64,000 nucleotides of DNA from Bugula neritina (lineage: Eukaryota; Animalia; Bryozoa). Below are positions 3,601 through 63,040 of the stretch, piece after piece. The stretch covers positions 2,385,751 through 2,449,750 of the forward strand of contig OZ037773.1 in NCBI GenBank assembly GCA_964035545.1. The letters run 5' to 3'. Every line of letters starts with the position of its first letter. Position 1 is the first letter of the stretch. The notes below the pieces were generated by a model. The model worked only from the letters and a program-made list of their open reading frames with translations. It was not told the DNA's origin and made no database searches. Both the position numbers and the translations under genes were made by a program.

Positions 3601-5208
3601 GAAGAAGTGTTTTGTAAATTTTATTTTCTATAGTGATAATAATATTATGGAGCGCAATTCTCAGATTATATCTAAGAATTTAAAATTATATAATTCTACA
3701 AAAATAGCTTGTACAAGTATGAAATATCAACCATATACAAAAGTAAAGAATAATAGTGTATTATAACGCAGTACGGTATACCAAGCTATAGTTTTAAAAC
3801 TAATGCTCATAAAAAATCTTTGTGTTTTTTCTCTGTTGAGATCAGAAATTTTGTACGTAACTGTATTAGTGTACGGTACTTAAGCACTATTTTAGCCCAG
3901 TGAGGTGTGCATCCTTTTTTAAAAGTTTTTTGTAAGTAATTCTACTGTTGTCTCTAGCTTTTAGATTTATTCATTCAGCATCACCCATGATGACCTTTCA
4001 CTAAACTAGCAAAGTGGACCAGTTGAAAGCTAGCATCAGCTTTTTCATTACAGAAATTAAAATATATATTATGTAATATGGGCTGATATTAATTGCAGGG
4101 CTCATAGTATATTTAGCTATACTGTGCAGCTTTAGTTTAATAGAGTTGCTGTGGGTTGCTTTACAATAATCATACAATAATTTTGCTTTATTTAATTTGT
4201 ATGGTAATATTTCTTTTTAGCTGAAGCAACTTATTGCTTCAAAACCAATGTTCTTAGAGTTGTCTTCTATATAAATAAATAGGTGTGACTTTAATATCTG
4301 AAATTATGTAGAGCATCTGCCACCCAATGACCTGCAAAAGATATTATTTATTGATTATTAATATTGTTAATAATATTTATATTATTATTATATAATAATT
4401 ATTAATAATCATTAAGATATTAATAATAATTATTATTATAGTACACTATATTCTAATGAACTACCACCTTGTGCACATACAAAAAGGATGTTTATTTCCT
4501 ATTTTTGAGGTGACAACCCATAAACATGTTAATATTGTGAATTTAGAACAGCTCTGCCATGATGGGTGTAATGTAAAAGAAAGCAGCCATGTTAAGCTAA
4601 AGCTGAGCAGAAAATGAACTGTAATTAGCCCTGCACTCATTGTGCGTGGATATTACATAATATATATATTATTACACTTTTTGTAAGGAAAAAGCTGATG
4701 GTAGCTTCCAACTGATCTACTACTGGAGTAAAATAATCTAGAGGGTATAATAAACAAGTATTATCTGTGGATTATTGGTCTGATAAGTTATGAATCCTTT
4801 CATATCTACTATTCAACTCACAGCTCTTATAACTCTATTTCTGTAATGGTGTGACTGCAGGTAAAATTTGAACAGTAGCTATGAGTTGCTAAGGTGCCAC
4901 CCATTCGTGTTCATTATAGACAACAGCAACTGAACAAATTGCACCAGGAGTCTGCTTCAACATAACTATTTTGATTTGTGAAGTCTGGGATGGACAATTC
5001 CTGGAATGCAGGTTAAGCATGATAGAAGATTGTACTTTTTATTCAGTTGTTTATGTATACACTATACTTTACATAGTTTATATAAATTTTAAATAGAACA
5101 TGTTGATGAGTGAGTGCATTGCAAACTTTATAGAGCTCAATATATATCTAGAAAGTTTATCAATAATTTATTATTCAAAGGTTTGAACAACTCTACAAGT
5201 AAACAAGT

Positions 5209-5224
5209 GGCCCTGAAAAGGCCC
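5209..5224 (-). terminator. Histone-type 3' stem-loop of chimeric gene copy 1
   Basis: Minus strand GGGCCTTTTCAGGGCC-AC with one G.G mismatch. Preceded by the H2B 3'UTR (ccaagctccactactaaccccaac) and followed by the H2B downstream flank (ttacttgtagagttg). Confidence 0.85.
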
Positions 5225-5267
5225 GTTGGGGTTAGTAGTGGAGCTTGGAGAGATTACTAACAGGTTG

Positions 5268-6675
5268 TCATAGACTAGAATGCGAGATTTCTTCGTCCAC
5301 ATATCGACTGAGAAGTAGTTGCAGCAAAGTATTTTGTCTTTGCTTTACCTGTATAAAAAAATATTATACGTTAACAAATGGAACTGTTGTTAACGTGGGT
5401 TTTTTAATTAATTGTAGTAGCTACAGATTAGAAATAAGTTTGCTTATTTTGCAATCACAAAACAAAACTATCTTTCATAATTGTTGCCTACCTCATGAGT
5501 TGCTCGACTTTGTAACTGTGAAGCCAGTTGGGTTAATTTTGTGTCACTCAGGGTAAAACTTTCGCCAGACTCCATAGCTGCAGTCTTCAATGCCCTTAGA
5601 AGTATTTTGTCCTCAGCTCTAAAAGCATACCATCCCCATATTGCATGATTTATATTCTTCAACTTCAACAATGCATTTAAATGTAAAGTGCCACTGTAAG
5701 TACTGTGATAAAACTGTGGGTTTGAATGTAGCTAGTTGGTTTGCATGCTATAGTTATGAAGAACAGGTCGAGAAATTGAGTATAAATTACGGTAGCTTTA
5801 TTGTGTAGAATAATATAATAGGTCTGCATCCAGCGAGCTCCAGTAGTAGACTGAACTACACTGGAACTCACTGGCTTTTATATACAAGCAGAACAAAAAC
5901 ATTCCTTTGTTGCAGAAATGCCGAAATGTTTCAAATTTCAACAGAGTAAAATATCTTAGTTCTCTTCCAAAGCTCTTTTCTAGTAGCCTATAGGTTCATT
6001 TTAAGTTAGAAAGTAAGCTTCTGCACCAATATGCAATTTCAACGATTTTCAGCTTGACTATTAAAAGGGGTACTTTTTTCAGCAAAGGTATAAACAAAAC
6101 TTCAGTACAGGGCGTCAACTTTATAACATTAAGTTTATACAATAAAGGAATTACCTTGACCACGGTGCTATGACTGGTTGACTTTGGAGAGGTAAAGGTG
6201 GTGTGAGCTCCTTGGGGTCTGTACGGAGAGTAATGACCTCTGCAAATAACGTCAGAAAGTAAAGATTATGCACAGTTTACAAGTTGAAAAGAGAAGTTTA
6301 GCAGCATAGGCTGAAGAAGTGCAATCTGAAACGTGCATTTACAGGAGTACAGCCAGTCACACATTACACTTCATCGGCCAATGTTATAGAGTTGAGTTTG
6401 AGCCAACATGATACAATCTACTTGAACAAACATTGGCTTGGGTATATTACAATACAGAAAACAATTTTCTACACTCAAAACTTACCATTATTGAGAGATG
6501 AATGATGGTCTTTAGTGTCATCATCACCTTCCTCATTCAGCTGACTCGGTGGGGGATCCAAGTGACGGTAATAGGCAGGTCTCAGGCCCTTGCGAGGTCC
6601 AGTACGTCCAGACATTCGAGCTACTTTAGCTTTTCCTGCTTTCTTGGCACCTTTGTAGCTAACTTTAAGAGGCAT
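5268..6675 (-). CDS. Chimeric 4-exon gene: H2B N-tail fused to SANT/Myb-like (FLASH/GON4L C-terminal-like) domain, 160 aa
   Basis: Exons 6675-6486, 6239-6155, 5618-5492, 5348-5268; all introns GT-AG, phases 1/2/0, joined ORF open. Protein MPLKVSYKGAKKAGKAKVARMSG...PVIAPWSRAEDKILLRALKTAAMESGESFTLSDTKLTQLASQLQSRATHEVKQRQNTLLQLLLSRYVDEEISHSSL*. Confidence 0.85.
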
Positions 6676-6772
6676 GCTGTTAAGTTAGTGATAATGTTGA
6701 ATTCTCGCTCTTGATGTAATGACCGCAACAGTAGTTTGATGCTAAATGATGTTCAGATCTTAAAGCACTCTG

Positions 6773-6916
6773 CATTTATATGTATAAACAGTAGTTAGAA
6801 ATTATCCAATCAGATGGCGGTTGCGTAAGCTGACGCCTTAGTGTGCCCTAATGTTTACATTGAAACCGATTATTTGTCATCGACCAATGAAACTCGTAGA
6901 ACAATCTAATTTGCAT
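6773..6916 (-). promoter_or_regulatory. H2B-type promoter of chimeric gene copy 1
   Basis: TATAAATG (6780-6773), CCAAT at 6806 and 6884, octamer ATTTGCAT 6909-6916. Homology to the H2B upstream region extends to ~7518 (= 39841). Confidence 0.85.
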
Positions 6917-8039
6917 ATCTTATACAATATAGCCACGCCAAACTGTTGGGGAAATAGATAGGAAACTTCGAGTTGAATTCCAATAAGTTACTCTAAACTT
7001 TGAAATAATATTTTACTTTTCAACAATTATTGATATAATGTAGATTTTGACTTAAAGTTTGTATATAACATCATTATAGTGCATAGCTTATTTATTTTTA
7101 TTTAACCAGAACTTTAAACTTTTTAAAAAGTTTGGTCACTTTTATAAGGCAAAATGTGAATTATTTAATATCTCTTTCATAAAAAAAACATTACTCACTC
7201 CAAATAATCAGTATTGTGCTCACCAATCTATCCATAAGTTCACATAGTGGCACTTGTGCATTTACTCATATACAGTGTGTAAATTGCAGATAACTTCATT
7301 ACTGGTATGACTATAAAATTATCTAAATAACCATGGGAATAGCTGAACTCCTATCATTCAATACAAGCAAGGTATAGATAGGTTCTTCTTATTATTAAAT
7401 CACAGGTGTGAGAATGGCTAAGGAAACTAATATTTTTAGCCTACAAATAATAAACTATACACAGATTAAATAAATAATTAAAATAGGCTATAGCAAACTA
7501 TTTTCTGACAAAAAAATCTGTAACTCACTGATTTGGTGAAAACAGTTTGCTGTTGCAGTTACCAGGAATCCACCCAATATCAAGATGTAGTAAAACATTG
7601 GTGTAAGAGGTTTGCCACTCATTATGAGCATTACATTACTGTTGCAACTCCAAGACAATACAACCACTGGGCTAGTCTTTTTCATTGTATCAGTATAACT
7701 TCAGGAGATGCCCGCTCCTCATAAGCACACAACAGAGCTAACAGTACGCATCCACGCGCATATACATTTACTAAACTTAAACTAGATGGAGAAGATTGTT
7801 TACTCATAGCGTTAAGATATATTTTCAACTAATGGCTGGCAACAGAATTGATTTTCTTTTTAAATTCCATGTCATCTGTAGTCAAGCATGAATTCTGTAA
7901 ATAACAATGCGTTGGATAGAAATTCATGACAAAAATTGCCAGTAAATAAAGCAGACAATGTGATGGTGAGAGATATGCAAAGAGAAGGCTATGCTGCCTC
8001 TTCTTCAGATAATATTACTCGTCGAACAAATGTCATGAC

Positions 8040-9403: not shown

Positions 9404-10290
9404 TTGAAATCTAAGATTTCTGAAATGACACGAATTTTTAAACATGCATGTTTGAGTAGATCTGACTTGTCAGAGGATATGCTAAAATATGCTGTACACT
9501 ATGACATGTTGAAACAGGCTCAAAAGACACTTATTGGTAGTTACTATGGCAAAAATATTTTGGTACTTACTCCGCTTCTTAGGTGGTATTTATCACATGG
9601 ACTATGTGTTTCTAATATTTATCAGGTTGTTCAATTTAAACAGCATAAATGCTTTGTGGAATTTGGAGAGTCTGTATGTCAAATGAGACGTAATGCTGAC
9701 AAAGACTCTTCCATGAAAATTCTTGCTGAAACTTCGAAGTTTTACGGTAATGTAATATATGGTGCAACTATAACAAATAAAGAGCGTATTACTGATGTAA
9801 AATTTGTTTCTAATTTAAATGCTGCTCAAAAGCTTGTGAGTAGTAAACATTTTATGTCTATAGAAGAACTTGATGATGAATTTTTAAAGCTGTGGGCAAG
9901 ATACTTGTAAGGGCATTGAAGAGTGCTCCTCTAGAGTGTGGCGAAAGTTTCACCATGGGTGACAAAACATTAATCCAGCTGGCTAATTCACAGTTACAAG
10001 GTCGAGAAAGCAATTATTGCTCTGAATTCAAAAACCTATTTTTGTTTTGGAGATGAGGGTAATAAACTTAGGACAAAAGGAATAATGAAACGATGTAATG
10101 ACATAAAAAAGAACTTTTAAATGTGCTAAATAACAAATCTAGGGTGCATGGAACAATAGGGAAATTATGAGGCGCAACAACAAAGTCATGACTTATAATC
10201 AAACTAGGGCTGGTCCTAATTTTTTCTATGCTAAGCGAAAAGTACATAGTAATGGAGTTACTACTTTTCCACTCGATATGGAGATATCAT
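9404..10290 (+). mobile_element. Polinton/adintovirus pPolB fragment interrupted by SANT-exon fragment
   Basis: TPLLRWYLSHGL, RRNAD, KFYGNVIYG (motif B), C-terminal FYAKRKV..NGVTTFPLD; 9881-10006 is foreign. Confidence 0.85.
9881..10006 (+). pseudogene. Fragment paralogous to exon 3 of the H2B-SANT gene (also 61220-61345, 62735-62862)
   Basis: agggcattgaagagtgct...ggcgaaagtttcacc...cacagttacaaggtcgag matches the reverse complement of ~5500-5620. Confidence 0.88.
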
Positions 10291-14452: not shown

Positions 14453-15107
14453 GGGAGGTGAAACTTCCTAATGCGTATTCTGCAGAACAAATATCAGCCA
14501 AGTATGAGTCTATTCCACAGGCAGGTGCTCTTACCGCCTGGCCACATTTACAAGACTTAGCAAAAAACATAGTCAAGGGACAAGACATTTAAGTAGGGCT
14601 ACTCATTGGAGGCAATTGCCCATTAGCCTTCAAACCTAGCGAGGTACTAATCGGAAACGACGCAGACGATGAACCATTTGGCCTAGGGTGGGTTATCATG
14701 GGTAGTCTAGATACAAATAACACACATGATGACAATTCAGGCAACAAAACAACAATAGTCAATAAAACCGTAACTCATTCACTCAAGAAAGCTAAAACAT
14801 CAGTATCTTTCAAATGCCAAACTGAAACATCAAAACAAATAAATAAAATAATTAATTTATTGGCTCAAGATTTCAAGGAATGTGTAACAGACAAAGAAGC
14901 GGCTTCTGTAGAAGACAGAGCATTTTTGTCTCATGAAACAAAAAACAAAGATCGTGGATGATCATGTCACCATGCCTTTACCTTACAAACACAAACCACC
15001 ACTAGATAACAGTTTTAAAACAGCAAAAAACCATTTCAACTCACTGCTGAGAAAGTTCTCTAAGAACCAAGACTTGGAAAACCAGTACAAAGAGTTTATG
15101 GAAGACT
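14453..15107 (+). mobile_element. BEL/Pao fragment (copy of ~8157-8823)
   Basis: Near-identical to the first BEL fragment, ending at gagtttatggaagac. Confidence 0.9.
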
Positions 15108-15239
15108 AAAAACCCCATGTTGACAACAGTTACATTTGTTAACGTATAGTATTTTTTTATGCAGATAAAGCAAAGACAAAATACTTTGCTGCAACTAATT
15201 TTTAGTGCATATTTGGAAGAAGAAGTCATCAGTGCTTGA
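15108..15239 (+). pseudogene. Intron-3 end + exon-4 paralogue of the H2B-SANT gene (also 23038-23170, 59946-60077)
   Basis: aacagttacatttgttaacgtata...atgcag|ataaagcaaagacaaaatactttgctgcaacta encodes IKQRQNTLLQLIFSAYLEEEVISA*. Confidence 0.88.
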
Positions 15240-23037: not shown

Positions 23038-23252
23038 TAAAAACCCCATGTTGACAACAGTTACATTTGTTAACGTATAGTATTTTTTTATGCAGATAAA
23101 GCAAAGACAAAATACTTTGCTGCAACTAATTTTTAGTGCATATTTGGAAGAAGAAGTCACCAGTGCTTGAAAATAATGGGACCTACTGACTTGGGTAAAA
23201 ATAATATATATTTTAGTAATACTACCATGCATGTATATAACATAAAGACAGG

Positions 23253-38204: not shown

Positions 38205-39176
38205 AAAAATTGACAGGTGGGTGGAGCCTATGGCACAATATCATATTGCTTTCCTGGATGTATCTGTAATTCTCTCAGTACAGCCACAATCTTTTGTTGT
38301 AGCATCTAGAATGTCAACTTTTAGTATGCAGACATTCTATAGTATCCTTATGGGTCACACCACTTTCTAATTTATTCTGACCAACAGAACATTTTCCCCG
38401 CAGCTTTGAAAACTGCAAACTCAGAGTTATCTTCCCCTAGTTTAGGAAGTTTCTTTTTTACTCAATATTAATGCTTTTTATCAATTTGGTTGACATTGCT
38501 CTAATATAAATTGAAGTTTAACTTGGTTTTATTAGCTGATAGCTCATTTGTAATAGATAAAGGAAATACTGCTTCAAACACAGGAACATGAAACTTTTCA
38601 TCTTTGAAATAGTTATATTAGCATTAAATACGTTTTATTGTTGTTTGATACCAAAATATGTGTACTCTGCCAGTTACACACAATAACAAAATGCAACTTT
38701 ATAGCCTTCAGATAAAGAATATTTTAGAATAATAAGAACTACCCTATTAAACAATGCAGAAATAAGTAAACAAGAATATTTGCTTACTTGTATACTCAAA
38801 GTCCTTACATGTTACTAGTACTGTAGAGAGCGAGTTCAATATATTATCATAATTGAATAGAACCGAACCTGCTATTAAACAAAAGAGAGAATTACACTAT
38901 TAGAATATTGTGATAATATCTGACTTCTCTTCAATGTTATAAGTGATGCAAGATTTGATTTTGATAAGTTATAGTATGGGCCACCCACCCATTCGTGTTT
39001 ATTATACACAACAGCACCTGAACAAGTTGCACCAGGAGTCTGCTTCAACATAACTATTTTGTTTTGTGAAGTCTGGGATAGACAATTCCTGGAATGCAGG
39101 TTAAGCCTGATAGAAGATTATACTTTTTATTCAGTTGTTTATGTATAAACTATTTTACATATTTTAGATTTTAAAT
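38205..39176 (+). repeat. Left arm of ~970-bp inverted repeat flanking H2B
   Basis: Reverse complement of 41227-42178, e.g. gacaggtgggtggagcctatggcacaa vs ttgtgccataggctccacccacctgtc. Confidence 0.9.
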
Positions 39177-40448
39177 TTGTTTACTTAGTAGGCTATATGC
39201 ATGTTACCAACTGTTGCTAGACATCAAGCTACCTAGCCTGCTGCATAATAATTATAATACTTTTAATATCTAGGCTATTTCTACAATGATACATGGCTAT
39301 GCTAAAACTTCTTTTGTATAAAACTAGCAGAATAATACTACAATAATAACAATGATAATGATAATGCTTTTTCATGTTTATAAATACATGGCACACCTGT
39401 CTAAAGCATACATGTTATAAATTCCTCAATAGAATCACAGAATGAAAATGCTTCATCAAGTAGGAAACAACAACATCAACTTCACACTGAGCTGTATAAA
39501 GAAATGTTTGAAATACAATTTATTAAACTCTGTGTGTATAATTGCTATTTAATTTTAATTACTGAAATATTAGGTTTGAGAGTTGGAGCCAAAATTTAAA
39601 GAAGGCTAATTAAAAAGACAGTATAACCTACATCAAATTGAAATTGCCTAAACATCTCCAAAATTTTATTCCTCAAATTACTCCAAGTTGTTGATTTTGC
39701 TCCCTACAAGTAGTTTATATAATATAAAGATTTTATAGCACAAATACTGAACACATGTATAATTAATGCTTTCATGAACATATGCATTTTGCACCTAGCT
39801 CCTTTGACCTGAACAATTATAGCTTTTTCCAAAAATATTCTTTTTTTGTCAGAAAATAGTTTGTTTATATAGCCTATTTTAATTATTTGCTTAATATGTG
39901 TATATTCACATATTGTAGTATTTGTAGGCTAACAATATTAATTGTCCTTAGGCCATTCTCACACCTGTGATTTCTTGATAAAAAAATATCCAGGCTGTGC
40001 ATCAAGAAGAACCTATCTATACCTTGAATGGTAGGAGTTCAGCTCTTCCTATGTACTTGGTAATTAAGGTAGGTTACCTGCAATTTACACACTGTATATG
40101 AGTAAATGCACAAGTGCCACTATGTGAACTTATTGATAGATTGGTGCCCACAATTATGATTATTTGGAGTGCGTAATGTTTTTTTTTGAAAGAAATATTT
40201 AATAATTCTCATTTTGCCTTACAAAAGTGACCAAACTTTTTAAAAAGTTTAAAGTTCTGGTTAAATAAAAATAAATAAGCTATGCACTAATGATGTTATA
40301 TACAAAGTTAGGTCAAAATCTACATTATATCAATAATTGTTGAAAAGTACAATATTATTTTGAAGTTTAAAGTAATTTCTTGGAATTCAACTCAAAGTTG
40401 CCTATACCAATTTCCCCAACAGTTTGACGTGGCTATATTGTATAAGAT

Positions 40449-40692: not shown

Positions 40693-41067
40693 ATGCCTCT
40701 TAAAGTTAGCTCCAAAGGTGCCAAGAAAGCAGCAAAGGCTAAAGGAGCTCCAATGTCTGGAGACAAGAGAGAACAAAGAAAAGGCAAAGGAAGTCCCAGC
40801 ACATACATTACTTACAATGTGTTGAAGCAAGTCCACCAAGACACTGGTGTATCTAGCAGCGCCATGAGGATCATGGAGAGCTTTGTCAATGATATGTTCC
40901 ATATAGTAGTGAATGAAGCAGCTAGATTGGCAGACTACAACAGGAAGTCCACCATAACAAGCCGAGAGGTAGAGACTGTCCTGAAGCTGATTCTGCCAGG
41001 AGAGTTGGCTAAGCATGCCGAGACTGAAGGCACAAAGGCTGTGACTAAATACGCCAGCTCCAAGTAA
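40693..41067 (+). CDS. H2B: Divergent replication-dependent-type histone H2B
   Basis: [50 protein letters not shown]; intronless; 3' stem-loop. Confidence 0.95.
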
Positions 41068-41094
41068 TCTCCAAGCTCCATCACTAACCCCAAC

Positions 41095-41110
41095 GGCCCT
41101 TTTCAGGGCC
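41095..41110 (+). terminator. Histone 3' stem-loop
   Basis: GGCCCTTTTCAGGGCC-ACTA, with purine-rich gaagag about 11 nt downstream (candidate HDE). Confidence 0.95.
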
Positions 41111-41226
41111 ACTAATGTTTACTTGAAGAGTTGTTCAAACTTATGAATAATAAATTATTGATAAACCTTCTAGATATATATTGGGCTATATAAAGTTTGC
41201 AATGCACTCACTTATCAACATGTTCT

Positions 41227-42178
41227 ATTTAAAATCTAAAATATGTAAAAAAGTTTATACATAAACAACTGAATAAAAAGTATAATCTTCTATCACCCTT
41301 AACCTGCATTCCAGGAATTCTCTATCCCAGACTTCACAAATCAAAATAGTTATGTTGAAGCAGACTCCTGGTGCAATTGGTTCAGGTGCTGTTGTGTATA
41401 ATAAACACGAATGGGTGGGTGGCCCAAATCAAATCTCGCATCACTTATAACATTGAAGAGAAGTCAGATATTATCACAATATTCTAATAGTGTAACTCTC
41501 TCTATTGTTTAATAGCAGGTTCTATTCAATTATGATATATTGAGCTCTCTCTACAGTAGTAGTAACATGTGAAGACTTTGAGTATACAAGTAAGCAAATA
41601 TTCTTGTTTACTTATTTCTGCATTGTTTAATAGGGTAGTTCTTATTATTCTAAAATATTTTTTATCTGAAGGCTGTAAAGTTGCATTTTGTTATTGTGTG
41701 TAACTGGCAGAGTACATATATTTTGACATCAAACAACAATAAAACGTATTAAATGCTAATATAACTATTTAAAAGATGAAAAGTTTCATGTTCCTGTGTT
41801 TGAAGCAGTATTTCCTTTATCTATTACAAATGAGCTATCAGCTAATAAAACCAAGTTAAACTTCAATTTATATTAGAGCAATGTCAACCAAATTGATAAA
41901 AAGCATTAAGATTGAGTAAAAAGGAAACTTCCTAAACTGGGGAAGATAACTCTGAGTTTGCAGTTTTCAAAGCTGCGGGGAGGGGGGGGACCTTCTGTTG
42001 GTCAGAATAGATTAGAAAGTGGTGTGACTCATAAGGATACTATAGAATGTCTGCATACTAAAAGTTGACATTCTAGATGCTACAACAAAAAATCGTGGCT
42101 GTACTGAGAGAATTACAGATACATCAAGGAAAGCAATATGATTTTGTGCCATAGGCTCCACCCACCTGTCAGTTTTTA
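41227..42178 (-). repeat. Right arm of inverted repeat flanking H2B
   Basis: Reverse complement of 38205-39176. Confidence 0.9.
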
Positions 42179-47184: not shown

Positions 47185-48120
47185 ATGGAGAATAGCAGCG
47201 TTCTGTGTGGTGACATCACTGATTTTTGTGTAGATTCTACTAGATCCGCAGTGTTTTTATCTTTTAACATTTTCAGTGTTATATTCAACATCATCAACTT
47301 GGTTTTCCTGAAGAAGTTAGACAAATCCAAAAGAAACGCATCATTTTGGATAATAGTGAACATCGGTATCTGTGACGTCGTGACTTGCTCTTCCTTTTTT
47401 CTGGCAGTCAGCTGTGAATTGAACAGACAAATCATAACTTTACCAGCAGTTGGTGCCCGAACCTTTCAAGTTATAGTGATTACATTTGGCTTTGTCTCAA
47501 TTGTTGCTAGAAATTTTGTATTGGCGACTGGCAGCTATGAGCGATACGTCTCCATCTGTCAGCCTTATCAAGTGAGCTATAACAAAGTAGTTAGCAATAT
47601 GAAACTCTTCTTGGCCATTGTTTGGATATTTACCTTTGCTCTTATGACTATCACTATTGCCACTGATACCACTAAGTATTGCTTTGGTGAGTTTGGAGCT
47701 ATCCCAAATGACTCCAATCCACAGACTAGTGTTGCGTTTGTTGGATCCATTACAACAGCTTTTGTCATCTCTGTCATCTGCTTATCTAAGGCTTGGAGAG
47801 AGTTGAAGAGAATGCAGTCCAGAAGTACAGTTCCAGGACAAGATGATCTGATAGTGAAGAGATCTGCCCAGTATATTATAATAATCTTCATCACTCTTTA
47901 CTTGTCCTACATTCCAACAGCCATATCCTTAGTTTGTAATAACCTTAATGATATTTTAAAGGGCTTAGGATATTTGGCCAGATGGATTTCTTTCTATTAC
48001 ATTACAATTTTTAGCATTCTTAATGTTGTAATATATTTCATCATGACTCCAGGCTACCGTATTCATGTGATGAATTTACTCATGTTGAAGACTCCAACAG
48101 TCGGTCAAATTGAATCTTAG
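47185..48120 (+). CDS. Intronless class A GPCR, duplicate of 599-1534
   Basis: 311 aa, about 9 substitutions relative to copy 1. Confidence 0.88.
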   Translation: MENSSVLCGDITDFCVDSTRSAVFLSFNIFSVIFNIINLVFLKKLDKSKRNASFWIIVNIGICDVVTCSSFFLAVSCELNRQIITLPAVGARTFQVIVITFGFVSIVARNFVLATGSYERYVSICQPYQVSYNKVVSNMKLFLAIVWIFTFALMTITIATDTTKYCFGEFGAIPNDSNPQTSVAFVGSITTAFVISVICLSKAWRELKRMQSRSTVPGQDDLIVKRSAQYIIIIFITLYLSYIPTAISLVCNNLNDILKGLGYLARWISFYYITIFSILNVVIYFIMTPGYRIHVMNLLMLKTPTVGQIES

Positions 48121-49638: not shown

Positions 49639-50505
49639 ATGGAGACTGAAAATGCTAGAATGCAACCACCCCCAGTAGAAGGTGAGCGTAGAAATGCTGT
49701 TAATCCTGTGAATCGTGAGGGAGAAGAAGCTTACAGACATTGCTTGAAAGCTCCCACCTTTACTGGGTCGGAAGATGTCGAACAATTTATACAAGAATTT
49801 AGAGAGGTAATGGAGGTTGCTCAATGGCCGCATAGAGTGGCCCTTATCCAATTGCGGAGAGCGGTGACAGAACAAGCCAAGCCGTACGGAGTGGGAACGG
49901 ACATAAACGGGATACTGGCTGCGCTGCGGGCCCGTTTTGGCATCTCCGCAATAGACGCTAGGACCAAGCTAGGGAGATTGTGCCGCACCCCGCAGACCTC
50001 GCTGCAAGAACATGCCGCGACGGTGAAGAAGCTGGCGCAGATTGCATATAGCGATCTGCCAGCACAGCACCAAGAGCGTTACACCTATGACGCCTTTGTC
50101 CAGTGACTAAACGACCTGGGCCTACACCATCAACTACGAGCTAAGGGGATAACCAGAATAGAGGATGCCCTGAAGGCTGGAGAAGCTTACCTGTTGGCTA
50201 CCCAAATGCATCGAGCACAACGGAACCCACCAGTAGTTGGAGTCAGCGCTGCCAGGGCTACGACAGGTCCCGAAGCCTTCCCGCTGGAAGCCGAAGTGGA
50301 CCGTATGGTAGAGATGCTGGGACAACTGGTAACCATTCTGGCCGGTGCTGGCTCCGGTCAGGCCCTGCGGGTGCCCCCAACGCCTGTGGGGCAGGGCTGG
50401 AGTAGCGCTGATCAGGACCAGGGACAGAAAGGACGACCCCAATACCAGGGGGCGTTAAACTGTCACGGCCCGCGGACACTCTCCCTCCCCGCGGGCCGCA
50501 ACTGA
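49639..50505 (+). pseudogene. gag: Gypsy gag with in-frame TGA at 50104
   Basis: KAPTFTGSEDVEQFI.EF; frame continues after the stop to LNC. Confidence 0.8.
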
Positions 50506-50793
50506 AGGAGTATGGTGGGACACGCCGCCGTCTGTCCGTACGGACACGACGGAACACTCCACCCGAGTGGCAGGTACCACGCAGGACTAGTAGGCCCGCA
50601 CAACGGCCGAGTACCTTCTCCCTGCCACTCGCTAACCGGTTCCACCGGTTACCTCGGGAAGAGGAGCCCGCCACTGAAATGGAGCCAGAAGGCCCAGTGG
50701 AGAGCCCCAAACCCCGCCGGCACCAACCTCGCCGCCGGAAGCCCCGTAAACCACGGGTGAAACCCCCGCCGTCCTGTCAATCCAGGACAGAAC

Positions 50794-52761
50794 ATGCGGG
50801 GGGTGAAAGTACAACCACATGGAGAGAGCTATTTCCTACCCGGAAAGGTGGCCGGCAACGCCGTCACTTTCCTGCTCGACTCCGGTTGTACTACCAACCT
50901 TCTCAGTCGTAGAGTCTTTGAAGCACTGCCCCTCCGGAAAAGGGATAGAGTACGACCGTATACTGGGGAACATGGCACCCTGGCAGACGGGTCATGTATT
51001 CCCTTTTACGGTATTATCGAGCTCCCTGGGCGTGTCCGAGACCAGGCTGTACAGGAGACCTTTGTCATAGGCCAACTGGAGGAAGATGCTATCCTCGGAA
51101 TGCCCTTCTTGAAGCAACACCAGTGCCGAATAGACTTTAGTAAGTCGGTGGTGCTGATGGGCGGGCGAGAACTCGCCTGTGTGGATAAGTTTGGGCGTCC
51201 TCTGGTGGGCGGTGTTCAGGTAGTTCGAAACTGCACCGTGCCCGGACGCTCCAGAGCTACTATCCACTGCCGAGTGAACAGCAACCGGATAGCCAGGCTC
51301 GGGGTCGTTGAAGGCGCGCACGAAAGGATTCAACTCGCCAGTAGTTTAAACCGACTAACTGAGCGAGGGGAGGTCTTAGTGCAGTGTGTCAACCCCTTTA
51401 CCGAGCCCATTGAGCTCTCAGCTGGGTCAATGCTGGGCCGGTTCCACTCCGTCCAGGAAGAGGACGTGGGCCCGTCGCTGGATGACGCGACGGAGGCACC
51501 CCCTCGACACCCTATTCAGGGACGAGGGGCAGTCCCAACACATCTCCGGGAGTTATACGAAACAGCCAGTGGCGGCTGCGCGAGTAACAGAGAACGCCAA
51601 GTTATGGCTAAGTTACTACGCGACTACGGTGATGTGTTCAGCAGCGGAGAGCATGACGTGGGACTGACTGGAATTGTCAGACACGAAATACCGCTGACTG
51701 CAGGGACAGTCCCTGTCCGGCAGCCCACACGCAGGCTGGGGCCGGAAAAAGAGAAGGAGGTTAGCCGACAAGTACGGGATCTTCTGGACCGGGGACTGAT
51801 AGAGCCCGCCCATAGTGCGTGGAGCTCGCCAGTCGTACTGGTCCGGAAGAAAGACGGCAGTTGGCGGTTCTGTGTGGATTACCGCAAACTCAATAGCGTA
51901 ACCATACAGGACGCCTACCCTCTACCTCGTATTGACGAGTCATTGGACGCCCTAGCCGGCAGCAAGTACTTCAGTACGTTAGACTTGCTAAGCGGCTATT
52001 GGCAAGTTCCTCTGAGTCCCGACGCCCAAGAGAAAGCGGCGTTTATCACACGGGACGGTTTGTGGAAGTGGAAGGTGCTGCCCTTCGGGTTAACCTCCGC
52101 CCCAGCCACCTTCCAGAGGCTGATGGAACAGGTCCTTAGCGGACTCCATTGGAAGACACTGCTGGTCTACCTCGATGATGTCATCGTAATCTCTCCAGAC
52201 TTCGAGACACATGTCAGTCGTCTGCAGGAGGTTTTCGAGAGACTCCGAGGTGCCGGTCTTAAGCTCAAACCTTCCAAGTGCGCTCTATTGCAGCCGGAGG
52301 TCAAGTACCTGGGGCACGTTGTCGGTCGAAACGGCGTGGCAACGGATCCCGAAAAGGTACGGGCGGTAGAAGACTGGGTCACCCCCCAAGACTTGACTGG
52401 ACTCCGGGCTTTCTTGGGGCTGGTAGGGTATTACAGGCAATACATACTGGACTTTGCGGGCATAGCCCAGCCGTTAAACCGGCTCACCGCAAAGGGAGTG
52501 ACGTGGCAGTGGACCCCAGTCGAACAAGGAGCGTTCGACCGCCTCAAGGGCTGCCTACTAACGGCGCCCATCTTGGCCTACCCAGACCCCACTCTGGAGT
52601 ACATCCTCGACACGGACGTCAGTGACCAAAATGTTGGCGCTGTGCTGTCACAAGTGCAGGAAGGCCGAGAGGTAGTAGTAGCCTACTACAGCAAGTCTCT
52701 CTCACCCGCTGAACGAAATTACTGCACTACCAGCAACACAATACGCAAGGTTGCGTATTGA
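50794..52761 (+). CDS. pol: Gypsy pol (protease, RT, partial RNase H)
   Basis: LLDSG, ILGMPFL, WRFCVDYRKLN, YLDDVI, DTDVSD, ERNYCTT, then runs into the LTR. Confidence 0.92.
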   Translation: MRGVKVQPHGESYFLPGKVAGNAVTFLLDSGCTTNLLSRRVFEALPLRKRDRVRPYTGEHGTLADGSCIPFYGIIELPGRVRDQAVQETFVIGQLEEDAILGMPFLKQHQCRIDFSKSVVLMGGRELACVDKFGRPLVGGVQVVRNCTVPGRSRATIHCRVNSNRIARLGVVEGAHERIQLASSLNRLTERGEVLVQCVNPFTEPIELSAGSMLGRFHSVQEEDVGPSLDDATEAPPRHPIQGRGAVPTHLRELYETASGGCASNRERQVMAKLLRDYGDVFSSGEHDVGLTGIVRHEIPLTAGTVPVRQPTRRLGPEKEKEVSRQVRDLLDRGLIEPAHSAWSSPVVLVRKKDGSWRFCVDYRKLNSVTIQDAYPLPRIDESLDALAGSKYFSTLDLLSGYWQVPLSPDAQEKAAFITRDGLWKWKVLPFGLTSAPATFQRLMEQVLSGLHWKTLLVYLDDVIVISPDFETHVSRLQEVFERLRGAGLKLKPSKCALLQPEVKYLGHVVGRNGVATDPEKVRAVEDWVTPQDLTGLRAFLGLVGYYRQYILDFAGIAQPLNRLTAKGVTWQWTPVEQGAFDRLKGCLLTAPILAYPDPTLEYILDTDVSDQNVGAVLSQVQEGREVVVAYYSKSLSPAERNYCTTSNTIRKVAY

Positions 52762-53593: not shown

Positions 53594-53790
53594 GCCCCTG
53601 TGGTGTAATGGTTAGCACATTTGTTTGCAAATCAGAGCACCGAGGTTCCAATCCTGGTCAAAGCAACTATTTTTCACTGGTGTATCTTCTGACACCTTCG
53701 GCCACCTTTAGTCACCTTCACTTTCAGCAAGGTTAGCTAAATATCCAGGTAGAATCAGCTGCACAGCAGTCTGTACTCTCTACTATCACT
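53594..53790 (+). mobile_element. tRNA-derived SINE
   Basis: A box tggtgtaatgg, B box ggttccaatcc; acceptor stem does not pair; body shared with 3310. Confidence 0.65.
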
Positions 53791-59945: not shown

Positions 59946-60139
59946 TAAAAAACCCATCTTAACAAAAGTTACATTTGTTGACATATAATATTTTTTATGC
60001 AGATAAAGCAAAGACAAAATACTTTGCTGCAACTAATTTTTAGTGCATATTTGGAAAAAGAAGTCACCAGTGCTTGAAAACAATAGGTTCTACTGACTTT
60101 GATAAATAATATATATTTTAGTAATACTACCATACATGT

Positions 60140-63040
60140 ATATATGTTTGAATTTGAGGCTAATGCTTTGTATTTGTATTGTGCTACGCAAGAACTTCCA
60201 ACAGGTTCACCTATTAGGAGACGTAAAGAAAATACCTTTCCTCCAAAGTTTTGTGACTATTTTGGGAGACTGAGTGTTGAATTGCTGGAGTACTGCTCCC
60301 ACTTGAATGGTGTATTTATTCAACATAAATATAACAAGGGTGAACAAAAAGTTGGGCAGCACAGGCTCCCAGTAGATGGTTATTGCAAGAAATTGAAAAC
60401 AGTTTTTCAGTTACATGGTTGTCTATTTCATGGACATAAGTGTGTAAAAACAAAAGAGGTAGTATTTAATCCCATCAATGGAAAATCAATGACATCATTG
60501 TACCAAAACACTAAAATAAAAGAATCCTATATCCGTGCATTAGGTTATAGACTTGAGGTGATATATGAATTCCAATGGGAAAGTTATAAAAAGTTTTCAA
60601 AACATTGTAAAATTTTTTTAGCTTTGTTTCTCTCTAGAGAAATGGAGGAAAATAAACCAATGACTGAAAAAGATATCCTTAATGCAGTTGAAAACAACTT
60701 ATTTTATGGTTTTGTAGAATGTGAATTATATGTTCCTGACAGTGTGAAATCTAAGTTTTCTGAAATGACACGAATTTTTAAACATGCAAGTTTAAGTAGA
60801 TCTGACTTGTCAGAGGATATGCTAAAATATGCTGTACACTATGACATGTTGAAACAGGTTCAAAAGACACTTATTGGTAGTTACTATGGCAAAAAGATTT
60901 TGGTACTTACTCCGCTTCTTAGGTGGTATTTATCACATGGACTATGTGTTTCTAATATTTATCAGGTTGTTCAATTTAAACAGCATAAATGCTTTGTGGA
61001 ATTTGGAGAGTCTGTATGTCAAATGAGACGTAATGCTGACAAAGACTCTTCCATGAAAATTATTGCTGAAACTTCAAAGCTTTACGGTAATGTAATATAT
61101 GGTGCAACTATAACAAATAAAGAGCGTTTTACTGATGTAAAATTTGTTTCTAATTTAAATGCTGCTCAAAAGCTTGTGAGTAGTAAACATTTTATGTCTA
61201 TAGAAGAGCTTGATCATAAATTTTTAAAGCTGTGGGCAAGATACTTGTAAGGGCATTGAAGAGTGCTGCTATAGAGTGTGGCGAAAGTTTCACCATGGGT
61301 GACAAAACATTAATCCAACTGGCTAATTCACAGTTACAAGGTCGAGAAAGCAATTATTGCTCTGAATTGAAAAACCTATTTTTGTTTTGAAGATGAGGGT
61401 AACAAACTTAGTACAAAAGGAATAATGAAACGATGTGATGACATAAAAAAGAATTTTTAAATGTGCTAAATAACAAACCTAGGGTGCATGGAACAATAGG
61501 AAAATTATGAGGCGCAACAACAAAGTCAAGACTTATAATCAAACTAGGGCTGGTCCTAATTTTTTCTATGCTAAGCGAAAAGTACATAGTAATGGAGTTA
61601 CTACTTTTCCACTCGATATGTAGATATCATGCTGTTATCCCAAACATTGTGTATATATTTTGATGTATAACAATGAATCGTATAGTATTATTTTTTATTT
61701 TTAAATATTTTTTTGCTCTTACAATTATGGTGTTTTTACAAATGTATGGGTGTTGGTTTTGTATGACTTACTGAAAATAAGCTAAAATATAAAACTTCAT
61801 ACTTTGTCTTTTAGATTAAAAATGTATAATATAATTGCGCACTTCATTCTTTTGTCATAGACAGTTTAGTATCCAATTTTTCACAATGTCTCTGCACTTT
61901 AAAAGAAACCTTTCAAAATTACAAAAGCTTCATAGGGCATCACCTCAAAAAAAGAAAACCTTGCTTAAATCTGCTAATGGTGATTTAATTGGTGTACTTT
62001 GCGATTGTGCTTGCAATTTAATTAGAAGAAATGTTCTTTTGAATTCAAAGCAGTTCAATTAAAAGCTCTCACTAATAAGTCGAGTGTCAAAAATAAACAA
62101 AAAATCATTCAAAAAGGTGGATGTATTGGATTGCTGTTGAAACCTCTTGCTAAGATCTTGATGGGTAGACTTTTAAGTTGACATCATAAAAAAGTATTAC
62201 TTAATTGATCCATCAAAATATGAAATGCTTAAACCAGCTGCTAGTGCTGGAAATGAAAAGCGACAAAATAATTCTGATATGTCTGCGCATCCAAATATTA
62301 AAAATGTAAAAGATATAGATCAAAAAATGGAAGAAACACTAAATAAATCAGATTTGACAGACTTTGAAGAGGTTGAAAAATACAATGCACTACTAGAGAA
62401 ATATATCAGAAACTTTGGGAATGCTCTCGAAACCTCAAAACCTGAAACAATCCTTTGCGAAGCTGCTTCAAAAACTATAGATTTAAATAATACCACAGAA
62501 AACAAAAACAAAAATCAGTTTCAATCTTTTGAAGAATCACTTGACAGTATTCCTATATCATACCGTCAAAAAGCTCGTAAATTGGTGGATTTCTTGAAAA
62601 ACAACAACTCATTTTCTGTTAATCAAGATAACGAACTGCTTTACAAAAATCAAGTATTAAGAGGTTCAAATGTTAATCAATTAATTAATGATGCAGTACG
62701 AAACAAAAAAATAGAAATAGAAAACCTTGATGATGCGTTTTTAAAGCTGTGGGCAAGATGCTTGCAAGGGCATTGAAGAGTGCTGCTATAGAGTGTGGCG
62801 AAAGTTTCACCCTGGGTGACAAAACATTAATCCAACTGGCTAATTCACAGTTACAAGGTCGAGAAAGCAAGTATTGCTCTGAATTCAAAAACCTATTTTT
62901 GTTTTGGAGATGAGGGTAACAAACTTAGTACAAAAAGAATAATGAAACGATGTAATGACATAAAAAAGAATTTTTAAATGTGCTAAATAACAAATCTAGG
63001 GTGCATGGAACAAATAGGGGAATTATGAGGCGCAACAACA
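60140..63040 (+). mobile_element. Polinton/adintovirus mosaic: pPolB (motifs A and B, nuclease-like insert), PW, gasderminoid-like ORF, repeated pPolB end
   Basis: EANALY..ELPTG, VDGYC..FQLHGCLFHGH, KLYGNVIYG; interrupted by SANT exon-3 fragments. Confidence 0.88.

Follow-up and report, generated by a model that had tools for sequence, protein, structure and literature searches.

In the bryozoan Bugula neritina, a gene on the minus strand of contig OZ037773.1 (C9 in what follows) combines the outer parts of a histone H2B gene with the last exons of a gene of the GON4L type, and is termed H2B::GON4L-C here. It lies within a stretch of 64,000 nucleotides (C9:2385751-2449750), which was analysed as a whole and is referred to as the window; positions are those of the window unless a contig is named. 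GON4L and Mute carry two PAH repeats along with a SANT domain at the C-terminus, and in human and fly the SANT domain binds the C-terminus of NPAT/Mxc, placing the protein in the histone locus body (PMC13001340; PMC7432317). The anatomy of the chimeric gene, its donor, its copy number, its occurrence in a related species and a constraint on its coding sequence can all be read from DNA, and are described in turn before the action of its putative product is considered.

Architecture of the chimeric gene

Two blocks of homology to an H2B-variant gene at 40693 were delimited using BLASTN. The first aligns 6607-7516 with 40761-39841 at 85.7% identity over 952 nt and comprises the promoter and 5' untranslated region (UTR), 841 bp in all, followed by H2B codons 1-23; the second aligns 4897-5258 with 41418-41063 at 90.9% identity over 364 nt and begins at the H2B stop codon, taking in the stem-loop and ~310 bp of flank. 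Between the two blocks, 5259-6606 (1348 bp) stands in place of the 301 bp that encode the histone fold. Four GT..AG-bounded exons (6675-6486, 6239-6155, 5618-5492 and 5348-5268; intron phases 1, 2 and 0) join as an open frame of 160 amino acids that ends in TGA and reads, in order, as an H2B tail, an acidic linker and a GON4L-type SANT/Myb domain, the PAH repeats not being included. A sequence-only reading of the window had already described H2B homology from ~850 bp upstream to codon 23 with a junction at 6607, its return from the stop through the stem-loop and ~300 bp of flank, and, in place of the histone fold, an intron-containing sequence whose splicing gives an open frame of 160 codons; this description was borne out down to its coordinates, and the C-terminal sequence quoted for the protein agrees with the spliced translation. 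The features of the locus are as follows.

6676-7516 (-): H2B-derived promoter and 5' UTR; identity to the sequence preceding the H2B variant (40693) 85.7%
6909-6916, 6885-6889, 6806-6810 and 6775-6781 (-): promoter core, consisting of an octamer, two CCAAT boxes and a TATA box, kept in five copies
6486-6675 (-): exon 1, codons 1-63 plus 1 nt; the N-terminal tail of H2B contributes 6607-6675 and the GON4L-like gene 6486-6600
6603-6611 (-): in-frame 9-nt duplication of CTGGACGTA at the 5' junction, not found in the related species
6240-6485 (-): intron 1, GTAAGT..CAG, phase 1, homologous to a donor intron; splice sites kept in five copies and in the related species (contig L029)
6155-6239 (-): exon 2, linker, ending in the W-S/T-R that opens the SANT domain
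5619-6154 (-): intron 2, GTAATT..TTTTAG, phase 2, containing a repeat of ~220 bp at 5704-5928
5492-5618 (-): exon 3, SANT helices I-II and the beginning of helix III, 67% protein identity to the donor exon on C4
5349-5491 (-): intron 3, GTAGGC..ACAG, phase 0
5268-5348 (-): coding part of exon 4, with SANT helix III and the C-terminal tail, closed by the TGA taken over from the donor (5268-5270)
5209-5258 (-): H2B-derived 3' UTR with a degenerate histone stem-loop (5209-5224; Rfam Histone3 and folding)
5185-5196 (-): purine stretch resembling a downstream element, GTAGAGTTGTTC here and GAAGAGTTGTTC in H2B genes
5167-5172 (-): AATAAA polyadenylation-type hexamer, 37 nt past the stem, read from the sequence
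4897-5208 (-): H2B-type 3' flank, 90.9% identical to 41063-41418
40693-41135 (+): H2B-variant gene used as reference, 124 amino acids, intronless (Pfam Histone, E 4e-13); stem-loop 41090-41135, 37.7 bits
55903-58707 (-): second chimeric copy (L002; C9:2442115), 97.2% identical to 4800-7600

None of the exons of the chimera matches Pfam Histone, whereas the H2B variant does, and exon 1 has no Pfam match of any kind. The three GT-AG introns, inherited from the donor, set the chimera apart from the intronless replication-dependent histone genes. Alignment of five copies with the H2B variant indicates that the octamer, CCAAT and TATA motifs of the promoter are of H2B type. At the other end, homology to the donor stops at 5257, which is 11 nt beyond the TGA. 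The repeat within intron 2, which is SINE- or MITE-like (resembling a short interspersed element or a miniature inverted-repeat transposable element), occurs in more than 35 genome copies at 79-94% identity and is not present in the donor gene.

Donor, copies and a related species

Comparison of the insert with the whole genome (216 Mb) at the DNA level yielded one diverged match, at C4:17595101-17596564, with an identity of 76-84%. It covers 6600-6104 and 5687-5257, matching the insert exactly and leaving out the H2B flanks, and all three introns are at identical positions in the C4 donor and the chimera; the insert thus reproduces, as genomic DNA, the four final exons of the C4 gene with their introns. 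The copied piece begins within a donor exon, and upstream of it the donor encodes two PAH repeats (PF02671, 25.2 and 19.5 bits). The best Pfam family of the donor SANT domain is PF21227 (26.7 bits, E 5.5e-6, full profile; cut-off 27), and with PAH repeats followed by a C-terminal SANT domain of this family the C4 gene is, by its domain content, GON4L-like. FLASH, which is not known to have PAH repeats, was considered as a donor and is ruled out by the PAH repeats that the donor carries. The domain had been called FLASH/GON4L-like in the sequence-only reading: the GON4L half of that assignment is upheld by descent from the C4 donor, by PF21227 as the best Pfam family, below its cut-off, and by the introns shared with the host GON4L-like gene, and the FLASH half is given up as regards the donor.

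The SANT domain of the chimera also has PF21227 as its best family, matching the full profile (positions 1-49) at 17.9 bits (E 0.003; cut-off 27), and its next four Pfam matches are Myb/SANT-type families as well. For comparison, the SANT domain of human YARP (28 residues of the sequence used agree with the numbering in PMC7432317) scores 96.2 bits. In helix III, residues match the YARP contacts with NPAT at Arg2195, Leu2199, Gln2201 and Leu2202 (contacts from PMC7432317). A phmmer search of the SANT domain against the sequences of the PDB gave no match at E up to 10, a search of the ESM Atlas with exon 3 gave no usable match, and Pfam NPAT_C has no match in the genome and likewise none in control genomes. 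A separate weak match to PF21227 (20.2 bits) is found at C1:20830901-20830987, within C1:20829401-20832487 (L028), where it closes an open frame that ends in ..AVSHRYRNLVKY and a stop; it may be the last exon of this genome's FLASH-like gene or of a second SANT gene, for which it is a candidate.

The chimera is present on C9 as five full-length copies, at 2298467, 2342592, 2361347, 2391009 (the main locus) and 2442115, which share 93-97% identity, each of them having kept its frame of 160 codons open and its six splice sites intact. Since the same structure occurs five times at this divergence and its 5' junction recurs in a related species that was assembled independently, the chimera is not a product of chance. 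The H2B chassis itself was nearer to canonical H2B than the variant at 40693 is today: the chimeric tail KKAGKAKAAR is also the reading of the canonical 122-residue H2B.

The related species was reached from two directions. When exon 3 was searched with HMMER against 1.84 billion representatives, the sole match was an open frame of 67 amino acids (P0001), which is the relative's orthologue of the donor; the contigs that carry this donor (L016-L020) match C4 collinearly for 10 kb (82-94% identity), and PAH repeats are present there too. Intron branch lengths among the three taxa (chimera 0.184, donor 0.059, relative's donor 0.081) suggest that the chimera predates the separation of the species, and its predicted presence in the relative was borne out by Logan contig L029. 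This contig was found by a protein search with the frame of exon 1, through P0002 (63 amino acids, 79% identity), and surfaced only in the search of the 90% protein clusters. L029 aligns from the promoter through exons 1 and 2, with intron 1 between them, into the beginning of intron 2, and has the same 5' junction, the octamer, both CCAAT boxes and intact splice sites, the TATA box being altered to TATTAAT. The search with the frame of exon 3 returned the donor orthologue only and recovered no SANT exons of the relative's chimera, and metagenome contigs of the Joint Genome Institute (JGI) gave no match to the exon-1 peptides or to a pattern running from exon 4 to the stem-loop.

The copies lie among H2B genes and repeats. 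An H2B-variant family of five copies (40693-41135 on the plus strand of the window, and C9:2333786, 2348034, 2371355 and 2380148) alternates with the chimeric genes on C9, in opposite orientations; the variant encodes 124 amino acids with 71% identity to the canonical 122-residue H2B and has a canonical stem-loop followed by AATAAA, and one of its copies contains an in-frame TAG. Inverted repeats of ~190 bp flank the variant in the window (38985-39178, upstream of its promoter, and 41225-41418), and it is at these two places that part of the H2B-type 3' flank of the chimera (4897-5089) recurs. At C9:2364100-2365900 (L027; H2B part 2364969-2365286) lies a canonical-like H2B gene that is truncated at its 5' end, starting near codon 18 without a promoter, and that has a 3' UTR of the chimera type with a perfect stem-loop and a deleted downstream element. 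Loose copies of exon 3 were found at 9882-10009, 61222-61349 and 62739-62866 (plus strand; 82-84% identity, open, reading KAVGKILVRALKSA..), and loose copies of exon 4 with part of intron 3 at 15107-15227, 23038-23158 and 59946-60065 (85-88% identity). They sit in repeated transposon-like units beside polymerase- or integrase-like open frames, and since their residues are nearer to the chimera than to the donor, the comparison suggests capture of parts of the chimera by a mobile element.

Elsewhere in the window, two near-identical, intronless, receptor-like frames of 311 amino acids (599-1534 and 47185-48120, plus strand) lie 46.6 kb apart, from which it follows that the window contains a large tandem segmental duplication. 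On the relative's contig, a 7tm_1 gene adjoins the donor locus. A GC-rich retrotransposon with gag-like, protease and reverse-transcriptase frames (655 amino acids) occupies 49639-52761 (plus strand) in AT-rich surroundings. A near-perfect hairpin of ~74 nt at 4221-4270 (positions 434-507 of L002), with sub-threshold matches to several microRNA families, is probably a small inverted-repeat element, and a match to the transfer RNA (tRNA) model at threshold (53594-53665, plus strand; 29.1 bits), with several non-standard pairs in its acceptor stem, is probably a tRNA-derived repeat or pseudogene.

Coding constraint and alternative explanations

The reading that is favoured here, and that we hold to be probable, is that H2B::GON4L-C is a lineage-specific chimeric protein-coding gene, kept by selection in five copies, whose SANT protein would act at the histone locus body. 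That the protein matters is best supported by comparing the chimera of one species with that of the other. In the GON4L-derived codons 27-91, 8 synonymous differences (Sd) were counted over 46.8 sites and 5 non-synonymous differences (Nd) over 148.2, giving a ratio of the two proportions (pN/pS) of 0.20 (binomial P 0.004); over all 91 codons of exons 1 and 2 the ratio is 0.29 (P 0.005). The between-species pN of 0.034 is also lower than the divergence of intron 1, which is 0.087, and by this comparison the chimeric protein looks to be under selection. The pattern of insertions and deletions (indels) was examined as well. In the parts of the introns that can be aligned with the donor, six indels fall on the stem branch and a further seven separate the five copies, and of these three and six, respectively, have lengths not divisible by three. 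The exons have acquired a single in-frame change of 3 bp, with no frameshift and no stop codon. Under simulated random substitution the frame stays free of stops in 20-38% of trials per time slice, and as a rough estimate the joint chance of the intact frames under neutrality would be ~1e-3 or less. Taken with the intact frame and splice sites in the five copies and in the relative, the between-species ratios of 0.2-0.3 indicate that the chimeric gene is probably functional.

Several observations weigh against this reading. The between-species test spans exons 1 and 2, that is, the 91 codons of the tail and linker, and leaves out the SANT helices, and its pS of 0.17-0.20 exceeds the divergence of the introns without explanation. 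When the five copies are compared with one another, which is a weak test, dN/dS lies between 0.4 and 1.3 with dN close to the divergence of the introns, so that constraint among the recent copies appears weak or not measurable. Codon parsimony over three taxa assigns 16 synonymous and 29 non-synonymous changes to the chimera branch, with an omega of 0.55 as against 0.09 for the donor; by this analysis constraint on the chimera branch is relaxed, and its omega is not 1. The SANT domain of the chimera scores 9 bits lower on PF21227 than that of the donor, and the residue at the position of YARP Phe2196 in helix III is Gln in all five chimeras and Leu in the donor and in its orthologue in the relative. 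The surroundings of the locus are rearranging and rich in transposons, with loose exon fragments in nearby repeats.

Transcript evidence is a further point of this kind: no run recorded as RNA contains the locus, and contigs over the locus from the two runs that cover it show no joint at the predicted splices. Run X2 covers exons, introns and flanks alike and is therefore DNA. Run X1 is labelled RNA-Seq; its contigs span the introns and are mostly 90-95% alike, and it is read as genomic DNA of a relative, in which case its exon-biased depth reflects conservation and not expression. One joint in X1, from 5347 to 5542, has non-canonical ends, whereas splicing of intron 3 would join 5348|5492.

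Some of these observations would also suit a non-functional relic, that is, a pseudogene formed by illegitimate recombination and copied by segmental duplication in a transposon-rich region, whose frame has stayed open by chance or by gene conversion. The dN/dS values among the copies, the decay of the 3' processing signals and the lack of the locus from any run recorded as RNA speak for a relic, as do the neighbouring H2B variant with its in-frame stop, the 5'-truncated H2B and the exon fragments scattered in repeats. Such a relic would, however, have had to keep its frame and every splice site in five of five copies, and those of exons 1 and 2 in L029, despite a neutral divergence of 9-24% (donor, between species), and to have taken up 13 indels in its introns with none shifting the frame in its exons. 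The low between-species pN/pS (P about 0.004) also argues against it, and a relic is judged to be unlikely.

A more specific alternative shares the idea of a functional protein and adds a particular transcript: the mRNA would be replication-coupled and spliced, with its end at the stem-loop and SLBP bound to it, and its product would be a decoy titrating NPAT out of the reach of FLASH and GON4L. The H2B promoter and 3' UTR have been kept, the SANT domain is of the NPAT-binding GON4L type, and one copy, at C9:2342592 (L005), retains a perfect stem (GGCCCT/AGGGCC), the only one of the five to do so. The signals at the 3' end point the other way. On the Rfam Histone3 model (RF00032; gathering score 34) the H2B variant scores 37.7 bits, whereas all five chimeras fall below the gathering score, with 30.7 bits for L005, 19.4 for the main locus, 19.2 for each of two others, and no match for L002, where two changes (GGGCTT) leave the stem-loop more degraded than in any other copy. 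A C-to-G change at the third stem position is common to four copies (G5222 at the main locus) and leaves a G.G mismatch at the third stem pair. The minimum-energy fold of the main locus is a shifted 6-bp stem that includes one G.U pair and closes on a loop of 3 nt (-9.4 kcal/mol, z -0.86), compared with the canonical 6-bp stem and 4-nt loop of the H2B variant (-11.4 kcal/mol, z -3.27). Beyond the stem, the downstream element reads GTAGAG in all five chimeras in place of GAAGAG (an A-to-T change), its spacing from the stem has been altered by small indels in each of them, and AATAAA follows; the H2B variant and all of the chimeras have this hexamer, which is absent behind canonical H2B genes. 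Pandey et al. (1990) are reported to have found that, when introns are put into histone genes, 3' ends form instead at poly(A) sites farther downstream. With introns present, and with stem-loop and downstream element both in decay, the mRNA of most copies probably acquires its poly(A) tail at the AATAAA beyond them and does not end at the stem-loop. Of what had been claimed for this end of the gene, the homology of its stem-loop to that of H2B stands, but the stem-loop of the main-locus copy is not canonical, and an mRNA ending there is not supported. The decoy is further weakened by the Gln at the position of Phe2196, a residue that in YARP belongs to the hydrophobic core as well as to the NPAT interface (PMC7432317). 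Overall, a stem-loop-ended decoy is unlikely. A bolder version, in which the histone promoter drives the SANT-only fragment of GON4L/Mute as an NPAT competitor made alongside the histones, forming a new lineage-specific layer of feedback, and in which the copy at C9:2342592 could give the first intron-containing, non-histone, stem-loop-ended mRNA, is a speculative proposal to which we attach little probability.

Finally, a mis-join of an H2B gene to a GON4L gene during assembly, considered on account of the duplicated, repeat-rich setting but with no observation in its favour, can be dismissed, since five diverged copies exist, both junctions are crossed by independent contigs (the 5' junction by a contig of an independent DNA run, record 13, 6512-6686, with 2 differences; the 3' junction by a contig of a second run, 5207-5336) and the relative's L029 contains the 5' junction with substitutions of its own.

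Origin, proposed action and significance

It is proposed that the selected chimeric gene arose in one event at the DNA level, in which the histone-fold segment of an H2B gene was exchanged for a genomic piece of 1.1-1.35 kb from the GON4L/Mute-like gene on C4, while the promoter (octamer, two CCAAT boxes and TATA), the 5' UTR, the first 23 codons encoding the basic tail and the 3' UTR of H2B would have been kept. Joining would have been by short microhomologies. At the 5' junction H2B ATGTCTGGA meets donor CTGGACCTCGC with CTGGA in common, and the relative's copy has this simple junction; at the 3' junction donor ..GTTAG meets H2B TAATCTC.., with AG as the microhomology. Retroposition is ruled out as the route by the introns that have been retained. 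The chimera would have formed first and the species split afterwards, with amplification to five copies by segmental duplication on C9 coming last and selection holding the frame open.

The gene would then be transcribed from its H2B promoter in proliferating cells and spliced, and the basic H2B tail could plausibly act as a nuclear import signal. A small nuclear protein of this kind may reach the histone locus body by way of its SANT domain. Mute keeps histone genes repressed outside S phase and binds other partners through its PAH repeats (PMC13001340); a protein without PAH repeats would occupy the NPAT/Mxc scaffold without those partners, and could in this way modulate full-length GON4L (and FLASH) on NPAT/Mxc or compete with them.

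Set beside known systems, the chimera is closest in its coding part to GON4L/YARP of vertebrates, Mute of Drosophila and GON-4 of C. elegans. Its last 137 codons come from this species' own GON4L-like gene, with the SANT/Myb domain C-terminal, PF21227 as best family and three intron positions in common with that gene, and Mute itself has a natural short C-terminal isoform (PMC13001340). It differs from these proteins in having neither PAH repeats nor a long disordered N-terminal region, in taking its promoter, 5' UTR, first 23 codons and 3' UTR from a histone gene, in a loop between SANT helices I and II that is ~7 residues longer (as it is in the donor), and in a SANT domain more diverged than the donor's, with Gln in place of Phe2196. 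With replication-dependent H2B genes it shares the promoter, the basic tail, a homologue of the 3' UTR stem-loop, a purine-rich downstream element and a location in a cluster of H2B-variant genes; unlike them it has no histone fold, three introns, a sub-threshold stem-loop, an altered downstream element and AATAAA. Its SANT/Myb domain is also homologous to that of FLASH/CASP8AP2, where the domain binds NPAT (PMC7432317), but FLASH is not the source of the insert: the donor has PAH repeats, a feature described for GON4L/Mute.

Young chimeric genes such as jingwei and sphinx of Drosophila offer another comparison. Like them, the chimera joins a regulatory and 5' part to a foreign coding 3' part, has been amplified and shows relaxed constraint; unlike them, it has parents that belong to one pathway, and its introns indicate a genomic and not a retroposed origin. 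In the literature that was searched, no chimera of a histone gene with GON4L and no non-histone, intron-containing gene on a histone chassis was reported. As a chimeric gene formed by exon shuffling at the DNA level, H2B::GON4L-C is of a known kind; the pairing of its parents and its retention are what is unusual.

Both parents come from one pathway, one supplying the shell of a histone gene and the other the scaffold-binding domain of a protein that silences histone genes outside S phase, and the hybrid has been retained in two species and in five copies. It provides a dated example of microhomology-mediated exon shuffling at the DNA level. If it is expressed, it would bear on whether histone 3' end processing tolerates introns, and would show the pace at which a stem-loop and downstream element decay once the coding body between promoter and 3' end is no longer a histone. 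The role of the contact between Mute and Mxc is still open (PMC13001340), and an expressed chimera would amount to a natural experiment on SANT-only GON4L at the histone locus body.

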